From contig CBFFSA010000008.1 in assembly GCA_965644495.1 (NCBI GenBank), positions 310,001-374,000 on the forward strand: a stretch of 64,000 nt of DNA. The letters are read 5' to 3'. Position numbers and translations under genes: made by a program. Origin of the DNA: Perkinsela sp. CCAP 1560/9 (taxonomy: Eukaryota > Protista > Euglenozoa: Kinetoplastea). Below are positions 1,340 through 7,606 of the stretch, in pieces (position 1 is the first letter of the stretch; every line of letters starts with the position of its first letter). Under the pieces are notes generated by a model. It was given only the letters and a program-made list of their open reading frames with translations. It did no database searches and was not told where the DNA came from.

Positions 1340-2660
1340 AACCCCCCTAGGCCCACCGGAAGCCTACCCCCCCCCCCCCCTTGGTCCTACCCCCGAACCC
1401 CGCAGCGGTACCAGTCCTGTACCGCCGCCTGCACAATCTGGGCATTCCCTCTCTGGATGGCCACCCCGATGGCCATTAAGAGATGGGCGAGACACCCATT
1501 CTTGTCCGATGAGTGGGCCCGGGCCACCTTGTTGAGGAAGGTCAAGGTTTCTGGGCCCGGGATCCCGTACGTGGAGAAGGCCAGAGGGTGGAATTCCATG
1601 CCCCTCACCAGCGCCATCTCCTCATGAGAGCGCCTTTTGTTGGCCTGAGCCATCCTCAGCGTGTGAGATGGCTCCGCGGCCTCCTTCTCCACGTACGACG
1701 GGGCCAGTGGGTTCACAACTGTGACGTCAACCAGGACGATCTTCCGTCCCAGCTGGAAACAGATGTCTGGCCCCCGTCCATTGTCGAACCTCGGCTCGTG
1801 GAGGTCCGGGTTGAACCCATAATGGACCAAGAGGTTCCGAAACGTCTCTTTGACGTTTTCTCTTTGACTGAGTTTTCCCCTTCACCTTCTTGCAGTCCAG
1901 TGCGTGTACGCAAAACTCCTCATTGCTGAGGGTTGCACCGCACACGCACTGGAGCTCAGGCTCCGAGGTCGGGGCGACCAGGTACCGGAGGCGGGCCGCA
2001 GTCTCACACTGCGGATCCCGCATGTAGCACTCCGGCCTATTTGGCAGGGCACTCATCCACTTGGTGGAGTGCACATTCTGGATCTGTCGCATGCAGACCA
2101 GTTGGGTTGCCGTTGGGGCGTTCCCCAGGGCTGCCGCACAAAGGTTGCGTCGTAGATCCGTGGCAGAAATTCCAGGTGCTATGCCTTGAAGGGCGTTTTT
2201 CGCCTTAACCTGCATATCCTGGGCCTTGTGCTCGAAGGGGATGGTCCCCAGGAAATCTGCCGTAAAAAGGTTATTAGTAAACGGCGTTTTCCCCAGGGAA
2301 CCCATCCCCCCGAGCAGGGCCTCGGCACATGCCATGACGGCCTTATCAACCTGGTCGTTGGCCCTTTTGGTTACCGGAGGCTCATGCGTCCTCACAATGA
2401 AGTCCCATCTGGGGCTTCCGCAGAGCCTCAGGAGGGGCATGGCGCATTGCCTGCTGATCTCCTTCAATTTCTCGAGGAAGGAGATCACCTTGGGGCTCCT
2501 GGAAAGAACTCAATCCTCCTCCTTGTCCTCGGACTCCCCGATGTACGCCCCCAGGAGTTTTAACCCCCCTGGGGAATGTATCATCCGAGTCCCAGAGAAC
2601 TCCGTGAAGACTTTTTCGTGCCTTGTGGCAACTTTACACTTGGCGGCGTTCAGCCGTAGC
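1340..2660 (-). mobile_element. 5'-truncated, frameshifted non-LTR retrotransposon (CRE/SLACS/CZAR-like, RLE endonuclease)
   Basis: Three overlapping minus-strand frames. RT C-terminus (LNAAKC...GLKLLGAYIG, ~2510-2660); thumb plus zinc knuckle (CVC...HALDC, 1727-2488); restriction-like endonuclease (PDICF..VDVTVVNP..AQANKRRSH..FHPLAFSTYG, 1387-1830). GC-rich relative to flanks. Confidence 0.85.
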
Positions 2661-2935
2661 AAAACATGTAAAATGACATTGCTAAAAAACATATTTTATC
2701 TCTGTCCTCGTATAAAAAGGGAACCGAAATCAGGGTCCACGCAAGACATACTTTATTACCCAGCACCACGTCTCCCTTACAGTAAATACTAAGCTTAGAT
2801 GCAACTTTACGCAACAAAATCAGTTTGACGTGCAATGTTGATATCATAAGATTTGATCAATGGATTGACAGATAAGGGTTTTTCATCAGAGAGTTATTTC
2901 GCCTGGAGGATATACTCTACTAGGCTTCGTCGAAA

Positions 2936-2989
2936 AGGACAAATAAGTGGGGGGTGGAGCTGTGACAAATAAGTGGGGGGGGCACAGTA
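2936..2989. mobile_element. Solo right terminus of a pogo-like element
   Basis: GACAAATAAGTGGGGGG twice, ending GGGGGCACAG|TA, resembling the right TIR of the 3767-6655 element (GGGGGGGTCACAG|TA). No partner end found. Confidence 0.5.
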
Positions 2990-3134
2990 CATCAATCTAT
3001 CTCATTGCAGATGATGAATCAGCATCCTCGTTAACATGTACACTTCCGTCCAAGAATACATGTATTTTACATGTTGTACATGTTGTACATTTTATTGAAA
3101 AATGTCCATCCAAAAAATGGCACCGTTCTGCGGC

Positions 3135-3182
3135 TCATGATTGGGAAGTACACTTCCTCATGATTGGGAAGTAAACTTCCTC
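3135..3182. repeat. 23-bp tandem duplication
   Basis: CATGATTGGGAAGTA(C/A)ACTTCCT occurs twice. Confidence 0.8.
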
Positions 3183-4021
3183 GCTTGGCTGAGCATACCC
3201 CTTCCCGAAAACTGGCGCGATGCCTAGCAGATGAAGTCGCGGTATAAAATTGAAAGTATGAAAGAGGACTTCACGTAAGACAGGGCAGTGCCCAATGAAC
3301 TTCATTGAATGAAGCGAAAACGTGTGCAGAATTAAAGAAATCGATGGCTAGAAGAAAATTACGGACTTCTTTATCTTTTTTTATCTCCCCTCCCTCAAAT
3401 CGCGAACAAGTACAATTACATAATTCCCGTGATTGACAACAAGACTCGTACAGCACCGTCCCAACAGACAGTTTTCATGCAGTTTTTCGTATATAACGGC
3501 GTACAAACAAGATCTCGTAGGCATCTAAAGGTGAACCACGAAACGGAGGGCTAATCGACGATGGCTTTTGCGTTTGAACGAAAATTCTTTTGCAAATTCA
3601 TCAGAGGCTATGTACTGTTTCAGAAAAAAAATCTTTTTTCGGCGGGTTTTCACTGCTTATGGTGCGCTTTTTGCTTCATTTACTACGAACTTTCGGCTCC
3701 TCACTTATTTACGGAGCAAGTTGCAGCGGCCATGCGCACACGCTTGGCATAAATGATTTTGATTTACTGTGACCCCCCCTTTAATATGGACAGGGGGTAT
3801 TCCCCCCCCTTTATTGGACAAATCCGACCTTTATGGACCAAATCCTATATGGACCCTTTATGGACAAATCCGACCGGGCGCCGCGCAGCCGCGCCAATTT
3901 TTTTGGCGTACCCTTTTTTTTGTCTCTTTTTTTCTGTTTTTTAGGGTATCTGTAGCTAGGTAATTTTGTCAGCTTTCACATAGTTCGTCATGTTCATATA
4001 ATTCAGTCATTTTTCAACCTA

Positions 4022-5281
4022 ATGAATTCCGTGGAAGGACCCTTAACCTCTTGGATTAAGGCAACACCCCCAAAGCCACAGGTAGGTAATCGAACAATGT
4101 TGATTACAAATGAGCGCAATGTCCACGCTTCTTTAGATATCCACGTAAAGGAGAAAAGGGGACGAACTGAGCTTAATATATACGAGAAGCGCGAAATCTG
4201 CCGATCGACTCTCTCGGTAAAAAGAATCCGAGAAAAATACGGAATTTCGCGAAGCGGAGTATATGAAATCCGTAGTCACGGTATGAGCTACTTTCAAAAA
4301 CTCATTGATCGTTCCATGGGGAACAACCACAGGAATCGTGCTTTTAACGTTCGAGGAGGCGACTACAATGATCCCGAAGCAGCCTGCTACAACAAGTCTG
4401 AGGCAATGGAACGGGTACACCGCTCCTGCGTCCAAGCTTCCTCGTTATGGTGTCCCCTCATCAGAAATATCGTCATCGACATGATACGACAAAATACGGG
4501 ATTGACTTCAATTAGTGCTTTGGAAGACACTTATGCGAAGTTCAGACGGTACTATGGTTGGGTGTGGTGGCGGTGGGGCAGAATACAGTGCTTAGCCCCC
4601 GCTGATGTGAACCTCAGAATTTCTCGTTGGGCTGAAAAGCTCTACGTTCAAAACACAGTCCGTTGCTACCGTTTCGCGCTTTTCGGGGATGAACCCGCCA
4701 TGTTTGTCAATGGAGAGGTGCAAGGGCACACACTTGCTCCGGTAGGGTGCCCGCAACCTAAGGTAGTGGATACAAACCCAAAGGAAACAGTAACCGCATT
4801 TCTTGCGGGCGTCTATGATTTAGGGGCCGACGAAGTTTACCCACTCCACCCGACTGTAATTTTTGAGCACGGAGCGAAGCGCAGAGAAAGCTCAACAATT
4901 TATTCGGAAATGACAAGTTACGCGAATAAATTGAAAGGGATATTTATTGATGTGAGCTCTTCTGGATGGGTGCGAGATGATATATATCCCCGCATGATGC
5001 ACTGTGACCCGCACACAATTCCGGTCGGGTGCACGAAAGCGATCCAAATTCACGACCGTGTATTCAATCGCCTATTTAAGAGGGCGTACAATGAGTTGCT
5101 CAGTACATGGCGAATACAGAACTCTTCGTGTAAGGTAACTCGTTATTTGGTGCTGGAGTGGATAAAAGAGGCCCATTCGAGAGTGTGGGTAAAGCATCAC
5201 AACACTATTCTTAACGCCGCCCGCAGGTACATCAAGCAATCAGCTAGAGTATCCAAAGAGCGAGAAGGATCCCGAAAGTGA
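4022..5281 (+). pseudogene. pogo-like (CENP-B HTH + DDE_1) transposase, internally deleted
   Basis: N-terminal HTH (EKREIC..IREKYGISRSGVYEI), FGDE, KETVTAF, SSGWV, IPVGCTKAIQIHDRVFNRLFK. The segment that should carry the second catalytic Asp appears to be missing. Confidence 0.8.
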
Positions 5282-6095
5282 ACCAACCAGAAAAGCGAAA
5301 GCTGAGATAAAAGTCCGTGAGGAAATTTCAACACAAATAGAGTCTTCACGAAATGAGCCGATTATTGTGCCGGAAACAGAGGAGACTCCTCCCACCCTGG
5401 TTGATACGTGGAAAAATTTTCGACGTCCCAAAAGCTATCTTACCACGCACGCGGTGGATCAGCTCTGCCAAAACGTAATGGAGGTATATCGGGAATAGCC
5501 TAATGTAGACAGGCATCCCATGTTCCTAAATACCGGACAGACGCAGCTGATGTTAGGCCTGGGCCGCAAGCCAAAACAGCATATTACATCGGTTCGTCGA
5601 ATAGCCGCGGCTTTAATTTTTAATGGGCATTTTATCCTTGTCAATTTCCAGAGGTTTGGGCTAACTGTTTTCGACAGTTACGAAACATATTGTCCCTCTG
5701 CTCGATCTGATTTTCTGAACAGCATCATGATTCACATGCGTCCACTGATAGGTTTCTCTGCGGAGATGAAGATTAAATACGCCGCAGTGCCGCAACAGCA
5801 ACCAATGACGAATGAATGCGCGCTCCATTTGGTAAACAATCTGTGTAACTCGCTTTTTTTGGTTCCCGTGGAGAACAAGCTCACACGCAAAAACATCTCA
5901 AAAACATGGCGACCATGCGTTCCCGGTACTCTGTCTCATCGTCCTGCCCTCACTGAAGAGCTTCACGATGAGGAAATAATTGACACTCAAGATTGTTTAG
6001 GGCAACTAATACTTCATCCAGACAATGACCGCGGGGACATGGACACAGAGGGGTGGGATCAGTCAGTAGCGTATGATGATACTTTTGAATTGTAA
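5243..6095 (+). pseudogene. Ulp1/SENP (C48) SUMO-protease domain, probable C-terminal part of the transposase ORF
   Basis: The 5520 ORF has NGHFIL (His), VFDS (Asp) and PQQQPMTNEC (Gln/Cys). The same frame extends upstream to ~5243 through a single TAG at 5496-5498 (YLTTHAVDQL motif). Confidence 0.75.
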
Positions 6096-6657
6096 AAGGG
6101 CTGTTATTTTATTTTGTTATGATAAGTTTACGTGGGGGTTTTTCCGTGAGCTCTTAACGTTGGTCTTGTTTTTTCCCGTTGTGAACGTAAGTTCTTTCTT
6201 TCCACCTTTAGTTCATTTGTGTGAAACTTTGTATGAGTAGGAAGTTTGGGCTCGATTTTTACGTTAGAACATCTACAATTTAACTGAATGGAACCTTTAT
6301 AGCTACACGGAATATAGAGCTGAATGTGAGCATGCATGATTTTTTGCTTGTTGTTAATTTTTTATTCCTAATTATAGTGTACATCAATAATGTATATCCT
6401 CCATGTATCCTTCACCCTAATGAAGAAGTGCCCCTTCACTCCTCATTGATGCCCTCCTCCCCCGCCCTCTTGCTCTGCTCTCCTCGCCCTCTCTCCTGGA
6501 CATGGATTTTACAATTTTGATTTTTTGTCGCATTATAAGTAAAAAAGGGGCCGCGAAGCGGCGCCGAATTTTTTTTCACACGCCTTTCATCGCCCCCCCC
6601 CCCTTTATTATGGACAAAAGCCGAAAAAGTGTCCATATTAAAGGGGGGGTCACAGTA

Positions 6658-6960
6658 CTATCCCTTAATAGGGCTACGTGTCACCCCCCCTTTAATAGGG
6701 CCATTTTGTCTGGAAGACCAAAAAAGATTTCAGGGAAAATGCCAAAAAATTGTCGAATGCGCCGCGAAGCGGCGATTTTCTTTTCCGCATCTACCCCAAC
6801 AACCAAAAGTGTATCAAAAGGGAGTAGGACCTTGTTTCACAACGATAAAAAAGGCGCCGCGAAGCTGCGCCGATTTTTTTCTTTCATATTATTTTCCATG
6901 TCTCCCCCTTTATTAAGGCCTTTTGCCCAAAATCGGAGTCCTATTAAATAGGGGGGATAG
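6658..6960. mobile_element. MITE (~303 bp) related to the adjacent pogo-like element
   Basis: TA|CTATCCCTTAATAGG ... CCTATTAAATAGGGGGGATAG|TA (left TIR carries a short deletion). Internal GCCGCGAAGC(G/T)GCG motifs are shared with the subterminal regions at ~3880 and ~6550. Confidence 0.75.
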
Positions 6961-7567
6961 TAACTAACTTAACAGCGCAACACACTCGCTGGCTCAAGTA
7001 CAGAAGACTATCCACAACAGCATACGTTGAAAGCTCTGCGTGATCCAGGTTAGTGTCAATCTGTATTAGAAGAATTATTAAACAAATGTTATCTCCCAGT
7101 CTACTCCCGGCGCAGATTACCGAACTCCGCTGGGCCACCACCCTTGTACCGCGGCCTGTATCATCTACGCAGTCCCTTTGAATAGTCACCCCACGGCTAT
7201 CACTAAGAGGGTTGAAACATCCCCAGCCGCACCCGGTCGCACACAGTGTATCTTCAACAGCAAAGACTTACGGCAAGTGAAATTTAGGAGATCCAGAAGG
7301 AACGCTTTCGGGGTACTACTCCCCGAGATGATAACTTTTTCAGTTAATTTGTACGGGTGCTTCACCATGCGCGTATTTTTGCAGAATACAACCCAAAAGA
7401 AAGTGAGACCCGTGTAGACTAAAAACCTTTCACAACATGAACTTTGTGTCCTTACATTGACATAAAACTAACCCACAGTCCGGTTTATCCCAAGTGAGGT
7501 AAAAAAGAACCTATAAAGGGAGAGAGGGGTCGAGGCTATTGTGTAAACGGGGGAGTACAGTAATCAT

Positions 7568-7606
7568 CAAAAAAATTGATAAAGATACAGTTTCTGTACC
7601 TTGTTG
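7568..7606 (+). other. Spliced-leader (mini-exon) relic
   Basis: AAAGATACAGTTTCTGTACCTTGTTG matches the conserved kinetoplastid SL 3' portion (GATACAGTTTCTGTAC..TTG). It is not followed by the GT donor of an SL RNA gene. Confidence 0.7.

Follow-up and report, generated by a model that had tools for sequence, protein, structure and literature searches.

In the textbook view, retrotransposons are the only transposable elements of kinetoplastid genomes. The question raised by the locus described here is whether a segment at positions 3767-6655 of the window, as the whole stretch of 64,000 nucleotides that was analysed is called below, represents a DNA transposon family of such a genome, and whether the transposase and the Ulp1-type protease that it encodes, which in this copy are found in different reading frames, belong to a single protein. 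A first-pass annotation, made from the sequence alone, read the segment as a pogo-like transposon carrying a transposase-Ulp1 fusion. The explanation that best accounts for the data, and that is considered highly probable, is that this segment is a dead copy of a pogo-superfamily element, from a family in which a DDE_1 transposase is fused to an Ulp1-type protease.

Termini and target site of the element

The element comprises 2889 bp, has perfect inverted ends of 26 bp and is flanked by TA on each side, as the first-pass annotation indicated. The left terminal inverted repeat is located at 3767..3792 (+ strand) and the right one at 6630..6655 (- strand); when the flanking dinucleotides are included, the arms 3765-3792 and 6630-6657, formed by TA and the 26-bp repeat that begins CTGTGACCCCCCC, show a complementarity of 100%. 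Within the window this 26-mer occurs in two places only (shuffled sequences are expected to give 0), and a genome-wide search, which had been suggested as a check, revealed 53 exact termini versus 0 in the control. The left TA is found at 3765..3766 and the right TA at 6656..6657, the latter being common to the element and to a MITE that abuts it. TA also borders 17 further copies that were examined, each of them amid different flanking DNA. Empty paralogous sites with the arrangement flank, one TA, flank, were found 10 and 12 times in retrotransposon copies, and since these sites have a single TA, the TA duplication is proven.

A motif scan detected five TT(W)ATGGAC-like subterminal motifs at 3781..3866 (+ strand; starts at 3781, 3810, 3830, 3845 and 3857), which are putative binding sites of the transposase. 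The number of these motifs varies among copies; the sister copy L003 lacks 45 bp at 3812-3856.

Coding remains of the window copy

All the coding features described here are on the + strand. The remnant of the transposase is an ORF of 419 residues in frame 2 (4022..5281) that includes the first predicted helix-turn-helix (4163-4282), the first catalytic Asp, in a GDE sequence (4688-4690), and the third catalytic Asp (5054-5056). After this ORF, coding sequence is found in frame 0 from 5283 to 5495, followed by a TAG codon at 5496-5498 and again by open sequence from 5499 to 6092. A frameshift near 5240 and the TAG at 5496 had both been proposed from the window alone. L003, the sole other full-length sister copy, is longer by two bases at about 5245 and reads TTG at the position of the TAG; given that L003 is intact at both sites, the frameshift, a 2-bp deletion at about 5245, and the TAG codon are real and private to the window copy.

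An additional lesion was overlooked in the first reading. The alignment with L003 and other sister copies revealed that the window copy has a private, in-frame deletion of 90 bp at about 5000-5003; 30 codons are lost, among them the codon of the second catalytic Asp. An intron as the cause of this difference was rejected; the segment is in-frame, coding, and present in all the sister copies that span the site. The window copy is non-autonomous and mutationally dead, given the 90-bp deletion, the 2-bp frameshift and the TAG codon.

Copies of the family and their reading frames

The genome contains 91 DNA matches to the element, and copies reach 96-98% identity. An ORF of 557 residues in L003 spans the transposase core and the rest of the protein down to the C-terminus without a break, and in a diverged subfamily of the same genome uninterrupted fused ORFs are present in L033 (742 residues) and in L034 (771 residues, at 1342-3657 on the minus strand), a copy whose ends are perfect and bordered by TA. 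Likewise, P0009, a protein of 784 residues from another dataset, shows the DNA-binding part, the DDE_1 core, the linker and the protease domain in the same order. The sequence that codes for the protease is kept at 18 or more loci; at those that also retain the core, it follows the core in a collinear arrangement. The coding plan of the family, ancestral and extant, consists of a single ORF, about 730-780 residues long and free of introns, that includes, in this order, a predicted double helix-turn-helix, a DDE_1 core, a fast-evolving linker, a C48 domain and an acidic tail. This kinetoplastid genome holds several old subfamilies, and L033 and L034 are among their members.

Both conserved parts of the protein are under purifying selection, with pN/pS values between subfamilies 1 and 2 of 0.18/0.90 for the transposase core and 0.34/0.82 for the protease; for the linker the values are 0.53/0.80, which is near neutral. 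Regarding mobility, one internal deletion is common to three copies located at three different loci, from which it follows that these copies moved after the deletion had occurred. Transposition of internally deleted copies and the number of copies support that the family is multi-copy and recently mobile.

Since the transposase and the protease parts of the window copy are in different frames, with a stop between them, they could be taken as unrelated genes that ended up side by side through a nested insertion or by coincidence; however, this idea is refuted by the sister copies and retains next to no credence, given the uninterrupted ORFs of L003, L033, L034 and P0009, the collinear arrangement at these 18 or more loci, and the fact that both breaks of the reading frame are private to the window copy. 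Still less credible is the possibility that the element is a domesticated gene of the host or the product of a segmental duplication, and not a mobile element. This possibility would account for the long ORFs only, and it is contradicted by the inverted ends, the TA duplication, the dozens of copies in unrelated contexts, the empty paralogous sites and the deletion derivatives that moved, which together refute it. The reading frames of the natural copies support instead that the fusion of transposase and protease proposed by the first-pass annotation is a genuine feature of the family, derived from an ancestral single ORF.

Word-based protein searches recovered nothing beyond copies of the same family. 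Scans with family patterns found no relatives in JGI metagenome contigs or in IMG/VR, blanks that are weak given that the patterns are narrow, and no genomic context was recovered on the contigs of the remote homologues P0012 and P0014.

The transposase

The proteins analysed were the unaltered translations of natural copies, and for the Pfam searches the sister copies were used instead of the window pieces. The three ORF pieces of the window had no Pfam match at E<=1, and the 90-bp deletion explains why a DDE_1 match is missing from them. In contrast, four natural proteins, none of them from the window, matched DDE_1 (PF03184, cut-off 22) with scores that barely exceed the cut-off (L007 22.8, P0009 23.8, L034 29.1 and L033 31.0 bits); no other transposase family was matched. 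The catalytic pattern in the sister ORFs consists of GDET, TDD with a His at +5 and, 30 residues apart, HD, and these columns (GDET, TDD..H and HD) are invariant in the family alignment. Only DDE_1, Tigger and pogo clusters appear among the feature neighbours of the transposase in the Atlas (0.93-0.96), which is taken as a lead.

The transposase model obtained with AF2 is poor (mean pLDDT 55), and for this reason its fold matches are weak. Among these, the best seven found by Foldseek correspond to Mos1, and VIA gave a Z of 5.3 with the cores of Sleeping Beauty and Mos1. In the same model, two three-helix units are predicted at residues 58-91 and 130-183, with a block-mean pLDDT of about 60-87; the comparison with residues 1-129 of CENP-B resulted in a weak match (Z 6.1, rmsd 12.8, 111 residues aligned). 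No match to CENP-B_N, HTH_psq or HTH_Tnp_Tc5 was obtained for the sister ORFs with Pfam, where HTH_28 appeared only with E=0.15, and the transposase profile had no match among PDB sequences. From the CENP-B-HTH/DDE_1 transposase described initially, the DDE_1 assignment was upheld by the four proteins mentioned above, whereas the CENP-B/psq type of helix-turn-helix was not recovered with Pfam and retains the weak structural match. Taken together, these sequence data support that the element belongs to the TA-inserting transposons with terminal inverted repeats of the pogo (DDE_1) type.

The C-terminal domain, the linker and the tail

A poorly conserved linker in frame 0 (5283..5402) precedes the domain that was recognized as a C48 cysteine protease of the Ulp1/SENP fold (5403..5936, with the TAG at 5496-5498 inside). 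The AF2 model of this domain from a sister copy has a pLDDT of about 90 across residues 1-178. The best 50 PDB matches listed by Foldseek are all CE-clan proteases, with E values from 9e-6 to 8e-4, and the comparison of the model with NEDP1, SENP and Ulp1 using VIA gave Z values of 13-15, with an rmsd of about 3.3 Å and about 160 residues aligned. The Atlas neighbours of the domain, by features and by shape, correspond to PF02902.

In a phmmer search of the PDB the single domain matched only Ulp2 (E=0.16), and the family profile matched Ulp2 5lnb with E=0.0022. Peptidase_C48 (PF02902, cut-off 20.7) was not matched by the window pieces, L003, L033 or L034, and P0009 scored 12.3 bits; the Pfam check suggested in the first-pass annotation was therefore positive for DDE_1 on undeleted copies and negative for Peptidase_C48 on the copies of this genome. 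Only the remote homologue P0012 passes the PF02902 cut-off (31.6 bits); a phmmer match (E=6.9e-6) connects it with the domain, so that membership in C48 by sequence is only transitive. The models nevertheless support that the C-terminal domain is a protease of the C48 Ulp1/SENP fold.

The His-Asp-Cys triad was initially described as intact, and all its codons are indeed present in the window: His at 5628-5630, Asp at 5673-5675 and Cys at 5817-5819, with Gln at 5793-5795. These four residues, in the C48 order, are conserved in the family alignment and align with those of Ulp2 and of the host C48 protein; in the protease of L003, Ala replaces the catalytic Asp. The domain resembles the cellular Ulp1, SENP and NEDP1 proteases in its fold (Z 13-15), and its catalytic residues come in the same order (His, Asp, Gln, Cys), but its identity to these proteases is 10-16%. 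The single clear C48 gene of the host, L066, has a score of 92.8 bits to PF02902, and its comparison with the transposon domain using hhalign gave only E=0.29; accordingly, a recent capture of this host SENP gene was rejected.

The linker, previously described as acidic, is only mildly so; a strongly acidic character is found instead in the C-terminal tail (5937..6095, including the stop codon at 6093-6095). The comparison of the tails of seven members of the family revealed a hydrophobic core at about 5970-6010 that acidic or Ser residues flank, and, at 6048-6056, a conserved EGW motif. The tail was modelled by AF2 as disordered (pLDDT about 30), and its hydrophobic core may represent a SUMO-interaction-like motif.

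A possible mechanism and a proposed role of the protease

It is proposed that the helix-turn-helix part would recognize the TT(W)ATGGAC motifs of the subterminal region together with the inverted ends, and that the DDD core would excise the element and then reinsert it. The protease may remove a ubiquitin-like modifier through isopeptidase activity, SUMO being the most likely modifier and NEDD8 a possible one; it could act on the element's own transposase, or else on chromatin or on repair proteins present at either the donor or the target site. The removal of the modifier would aid the propagation of the element. Deletion copies without the protease moved, i.e., the domain is dispensable in cis, which suggests that the protease may be supplied in trans. 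The escape from silencing through deSUMOylation of the transposase or of chromatin, as suggested in the first-pass annotation, is one speculative form that this role might take.

Other roles can be envisaged for this domain. It could be a module of the C48 fold with no activity on SUMO-modified host or transposase proteins, being specific for NEDD8 or ubiquitin, or a mere binder of ubiquitin-like proteins, a minority reading that deserves serious attention given that the structural comparison ends in a tie between NEDP1/Den1 (Z 15.0 and 14.8) and SENP5, SENP3 and Ulp1 (Z 13.7-14.8), that XopD and NopD, whose substrates include ubiquitin, reach Z values of 14.4-14.7, and that the low identity noted above extends to the latter two proteins. 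On the other hand, the conservation of the His, Asp, Gln and Cys residues across homologues that are 25-50% identical argues for catalysis over mere binding, and Ulp2, the only PDB sequence matched by the single domain and the best match of the family profile, is a SUMO protease, although neither observation discriminates among the modifiers. A different suggestion is that the protease processes the polyprotein in cis and frees the transposase, as the CE-clan proteases of adenovirus, ASFV and poxvirus do. The CE-clan fold, the matches to the ASFV pS273R protease and adenain (Z about 9), and the long and unconstrained linker are compatible with this role, but it is judged quite improbable; the eukaryotic Ulp, SENP and NEDP1 proteins match far better (Z 13-15) than these viral processing proteases, and subfamilies 1 and 2 and P0009 lack a conserved Gly-Gly-type cleavage motif in their linkers, hence self-cleavage at a Gly-Gly in the linker was rejected.

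The removal of a SUMO-like modifier is the preferred role, and it could be extended to propose that this is the first family of the Tc1/mariner-pogo class in Kinetoplastea, and a new pogo lineage that needs its built-in Ulp1-type deSUMOylase and its SUMO-interaction-like tail for transposition or for evading chromatin repression. According to this proposal the family would still be autonomous, given the copies with intact ORFs and perfect ends; in its complete form, it is viewed as unlikely.

Comparison with other DNA transposons

The family shares with pogo, Tigger and Fot1 the TA duplication, the short terminal inverted repeats, the single intron-less ORF with a predicted N-terminal helix-turn-helix part and a DDE_1-type core, the DDD triad with the second and third Asp about 30 residues apart, and the presence of non-autonomous deletion copies and MITEs. 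It differs from them in the Ulp1/SENP-fold C48 protease and the acidic tail at the C-terminus, in its highly divergent core (DDE_1 scores of 23-31 bits), and in its kinetoplastid host.

Mutator, Ginger1, Crypton and Zisupton, the last one being another DNA transposon that carries Ulp1, likewise have a transposase or recombinase that carries a C48 Ulp1-type domain or has one fused at its C-terminus. The fusion places pogo among the unrelated superfamilies that independently acquired this domain (Mutator, Ginger, Crypton and Zisupton). The enzymes of these carriers are of the Mutator type, Gypsy-integrase-like DDE transposases or tyrosine recombinases, in contrast with the pogo DDE_1 core present here, and their target sites, ends and host groups are also different. 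The Ulp1 cargo has been reported in Mutator-like KI-MULEs, Ginger1, oomycete CryptonF and CryptonS (PMC2836005, PMC3212892), and a pogo element with an Ulp1/C48 domain was not found described in the literature searched, in agreement with the initial statement that such cargo is typical of Mutator, Ginger and Zisupton-type elements and is not known from pogo. A pogo element with an Ulp1-fold protease makes a stronger case that the removal of SUMO-like modifiers is of general benefit to DNA transposons, and the family offers a compact, single-ORF and intron-less system in which this idea could be probed.

The host and the retrotransposon-only picture

The glycosomal GAPDH of the host shows about 70% identity to the proteins of T. 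cruzi, L. mexicana and T. brucei, and it is equidistant from them; from this sequence, the host is probably a kinetoplastid outside Trypanosomatidae. The first-pass annotation contrasted the element with trypanosomatids, which were said to lack DNA transposons. This statement is in agreement with the survey of 57 trypanosomatids in which none was found (PMC12278014); nevertheless, given that the host is probably not a trypanosomatid, the contrast is weaker than was implied. [quoted passage not shown] The family described here is also a DNA transposon of a kinetoplastid that is probably not a trypanosomatid; unlike Merlin, it is pogo-like, duplicates TA, and has dozens of copies with up to 96-98% identity, some of them with intact ORFs.

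The suggestion that the element represents a possibly undescribed family of kinetoplastid transposons is in accordance with its multiple copies and its kinetoplastid host, and 'undescribed' applies to the literature searched. This pogo-type family is diverse and was recently mobile; its copies number in the dozens and include some with intact ORFs, it comprises several old subfamilies, and it has relatives among MITEs. It alters the retrotransposon-only picture for at least one kinetoplastid lineage. If the proposal of an autonomous, protease-dependent lineage were true, the family would be a candidate for a transposon tool, native to kinetoplastids, for use in their genetics.

Subterminal GC-rich stretches

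Direct inspection of the sequence also revealed a GC-rich palindromic stretch followed by a T-run in the left subterminal region (3876..3904, + strand), and a GC-rich hairpin with a GCCGC-GAA-GCGGC core, also followed by a T-run, in the right one (6547..6576, + strand). This type of hairpin and T-run motif is present as well in the adjoining MITE (6658-6961) and at both ends of L032, the contig of a distant homologue.

The element family and its mobility

Comparison of the window with itself showed that positions 3765-3792 are exactly complementary to 6630-6657. The element at 3767-6655 is 2889 bp long, and each side consists of TA followed by a 26-bp terminal inverted repeat; this 26-mer has only two sites in the window, one at each end of the element, and none is expected from shuffled sequences. 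The coordinates, the 26-bp repeats and the TA duplication proposed in the first-pass annotation are borne out by the exact complementarity and by the TA at both ends. In the 21-Mb assembly, 91 stretches match the element, many of them at 96-98% identity, and the exact termini (TA, a CTGTGAC start, a C-run and then TTTAATAT) were found 53 times, versus 0 for the reversed control. TA was also present at both ends of 17 further copies, whose flanking DNA is unrelated.

Two sister copies, L002 and L007, lie inside retrotransposon sequence, and for each the empty site was predicted as the left flank, one TA and the right flank. Other copies of the retrotransposon contain such sites, 10 of them for L002 and 12 for L007, ten of the latter without mismatch. 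These paralogous empty sites with a single TA fix the boundaries of the element and prove the TA duplication. The two copies (L002:9-944 and L007:139-1479) are placed within reverse-transcriptase-coding ORFs of a multi-copy retrotransposon, which is the source of the empty sites. The sister copies L006, L007 and L008 carry one common internal deletion at three different loci with different flanks; therefore, these copies moved after the deletion had occurred and were mobilised in trans. The stretch 3767-6655 is a real member of a multi-copy family of mobile elements.

A single reading frame for transposase and protease

The coding sequence of the window copy consists of an ORF of 419 aa (4022-5281) and, in a different frame, the stretches 5283-5495 and 5499-6092, between which a TAG stands at 5496-5498. 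This layout, together with a comparison with L003, the sole other full-length copy of the same subfamily (subfamily 1), located 45 kb upstream on the same contig, shows that both breaks recognised initially, a frameshift and a TAG, are correct. Versus L003, the window copy lacks 2 bp at about 5245, has TAG instead of TTG at codon 5496-5498, carries 45 bp extra in the subterminal repeats (3812-3856), and, at about 5000-5003, is missing 90 bp, the length of exactly 30 codons. Since all other copies that span this site keep the 90-bp segment, the deletion is private to the window copy; it takes out the segment in which the second catalytic Asp lies, and it is the one feature omitted from a first-pass description that otherwise read the element correctly. 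A 1-bp insertion at a more upstream position is peculiar to L003, and neither of the two full-length copies of this subfamily is intact. The window copy is an ordinary dead member of the family.

The proposal that transposase and protease are fused in one ORF was confirmed by uninterrupted natural sequences. Among 1.84 billion representative proteins, searched exhaustively with HMMER, a homologue of 784 aa (P0009) was recovered; it is encoded on a 2660-bp contig of another dataset and shows the same order of parts as the family. When the genome was searched with this protein 66 matches were obtained, including two copies without stops from the diverged subfamily 2, L033 with an ORF of 742 aa and L034 with an ORF of 771 aa; the L034 element measures 2925 bp and has perfect ends with TA on both sides. 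Likewise, L003 keeps an unbroken ORF of 557 aa that runs from the core of the transposase across the linker and takes in the C-terminal tail, and L007 one of 496 aa from Met1 to the linker. The protease-coding sequence is kept at at least 18 loci, and where the core is also present the protease is downstream and collinear. The fusion is the real coding plan of the family. A truncated copy of subfamily 2 (L031) was also detected in another public assembly (ENA ERZ24900291, ctg3625l); it has the same left end, its 431-aa product is identical to that of L034 over the aligned part (55% of the query), and its source is probably this organism or one very close to it.

The transposase

Pfam gave no match on the window copy's own transposase ORF. 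On undeleted natural proteins DDE_1 (PF03184) was the only transposase family detected, with 22.8, 23.8, 29.1 and 31.0 bits (cut-off 22), and the matches cover profile positions 18-168 of 177 (47-166 for P0009). The invariant columns of the core alignment include GDET, TDD..H and CT..Q.HD...N..FKR.Y, and the second and third Asp are spaced by 30 residues, which is the established pogo pattern. The language-model neighbours are DDE_1 clusters throughout (Tigger, pogo, oomycete, fungal and parabasalid, at 0.93-0.96). Assignment of the transposase to the pogo superfamily is well supported. The AF2 model of this protein is poor (mean pLDDT 55), with the exception of three-helix units at 58-91 and 130-183; with this model the seven best Foldseek matches were Mos1 transposase, and the VIA scores were Z 6.1 for the DNA-binding domain of CENP-B, with 111 residues aligned at rmsd 12.8, and Z 5.3 for the catalytic cores of Sleeping Beauty and Mos1. 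Of the CENP-B-HTH/DDE_1 architecture assigned at first, the DDE_1 part stands through the sister proteins above the cut-off, and a CENP-B type for the N-terminal HTH is plausible from the predicted structure.

The protease domain

The copies in this genome all stay below the Pfam cut-off for Peptidase_C48; the exhaustive search returned 13 relatives, with PF02902 scores of 31.6 bits for P0012, 19.6 for P0011 and 17.8 for P0013, so that Pfam backs the C48 assignment in the remote relative P0012 and not in the copies themselves. By sequence, the 230-aa domain of L002 had the SUMO protease Ulp2 as its sole match in the PDB (E=0.16), and a 12-sequence family profile placed Ulp2 at E=0.0022, with ChlaDub1 next at about 0.1. 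In a protein-cluster atlas, PF02902 accounts for 28 of the 30 clusters nearest by features, and a shape search gave PF02902 in seven rows, plus one bacterial CE deubiquitinase of the SseL type. The AF2 model of the domain is confident (residues 1-178, pLDDT about 90), and the best 50 Foldseek matches listed against the PDB are all CE-clan proteases. VIA gave Z 13-15 with NEDP1, SENP1/2/3/5/7, Ulp1, Ulp2, XopD and NopD (about 160 aligned residues, rmsd about 3.3 Å), 9-10.7 with bacterial CE effectors, and about 9 with the ASFV protease and adenain.

The motifs HF, (F/Y)DS, QQ.P and N(D/E)C(G/A) are kept in homologues at only 25-50% identity, and they line up with the catalytic residues in Ulp2 and in the C48 gene that the genome itself carries. 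All four catalytic residues are kept in the window copy, including the triad noted earlier. The predicted fold is compatible with SUMO, NEDD8 or ubiquitin specificity alike and does not discriminate among them; hypothetically, the protease might deSUMOylate the transposase or chromatin to escape silencing, as was suggested in the first-pass annotation. Seven family members share a tail in which a short hydrophobic core comes after an acidic or serine-rich stretch, and most of these tails also have a conserved EGW-like motif behind the core; read by eye, this arrangement resembles a SUMO-interaction motif.

Synonymous sites are saturated in the comparison of subfamily 1 with subfamily 2; pN and pS are 0.18 and 0.90 in the catalytic core, 0.34 and 0.82 in the protease domain, 0.42 and 0.88 in the acidic tail, and 0.53 and 0.80 in the linker. 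These values show that purifying selection kept both enzymatic domains during the diversification of the family, the linker being nearly free. Judged by divergence, the subfamilies are old, and the copies within a subfamily, 96-98% identical, are young. A recent capture of the host gene as the origin of the protease was rejected: the genome has a single clear host C48 gene (L066, 92.8 bits), and its hhalign alignment with the transposon domain reaches just E=0.29.

Merlin elements in Bodo saltans and Perkinsela were the first kinetoplastid DNA transposons reported (PMC8101967), and no DNA transposons were found in 57 trypanosomatid genomes (PMC12278014). Ulp1 domains are known from Mutator and Ginger1 elements (PMC2836005) and from Cryptons of oomycetes (PMC3212892); a literature search for Ulp1 or C48 combined with pogo, mariner or DDE_1 gave no description of such a fusion. 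The family joins a pogo transposase and an Ulp1 cargo, each of a known kind, here combined in a kinetoplastid.

Genomic surroundings

Long intron-less ORFs on a single strand fill the window from 9 to 60 kb, and the first 9 kb, which are TE-rich, are where a long array of minus-strand genes has its 3' end. At 7568-7605, 0.9 kb downstream of the element, there is a relic that resembles the spliced leader (…GATACAGTTTCTGTACCTTGTTG) and lacks a GT donor. Across the genome, 91 dispersed sites carry the 3' end of the spliced leader with GT after it, among them tandem SL RNA genes (L061, L062); the upstream and intron sequences of the sites L059 and L060 are unlike those of L061 and L062, which suggests that sites of this type may be an SL-derived dispersed repeat or retroelement target sites. 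The GAPDH of this genome (L064:883-2118) is of the glycosomal type: it best matches the T. cruzi, L. mexicana and T. brucei glycosomal enzymes, with near-equal scores for all three species (501-514 bits; next 351). In the alignments shown, its identity with those of T. cruzi and L. mexicana is about 70%, and both lack an extra segment of ~30 residues that it carries at query residues 62-92. Taken together, the ORF arrangement, the spliced-leader sites and GAPDH point to a kinetoplastid host, probably one outside Trypanosomatidae.

A MITE of 304 bp (6658-6961) adjoins the element, the right TA being common to both; its ends resemble pogo ends (CTATCCC...TTAATAGG), and its family has at least 17 near-full-length copies in the genome at 81-93% identity. 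A GC-rich hairpin (GCCGC-GAA-GCGGC type) followed by a T-run is present near both ends of the element (3876-3904 and 6547-6576), in this MITE, and at both ends of the P0009 contig (L032:1-20 and 2625-2660); its conservation across about 35% protein identity indicates that it is probably functional.
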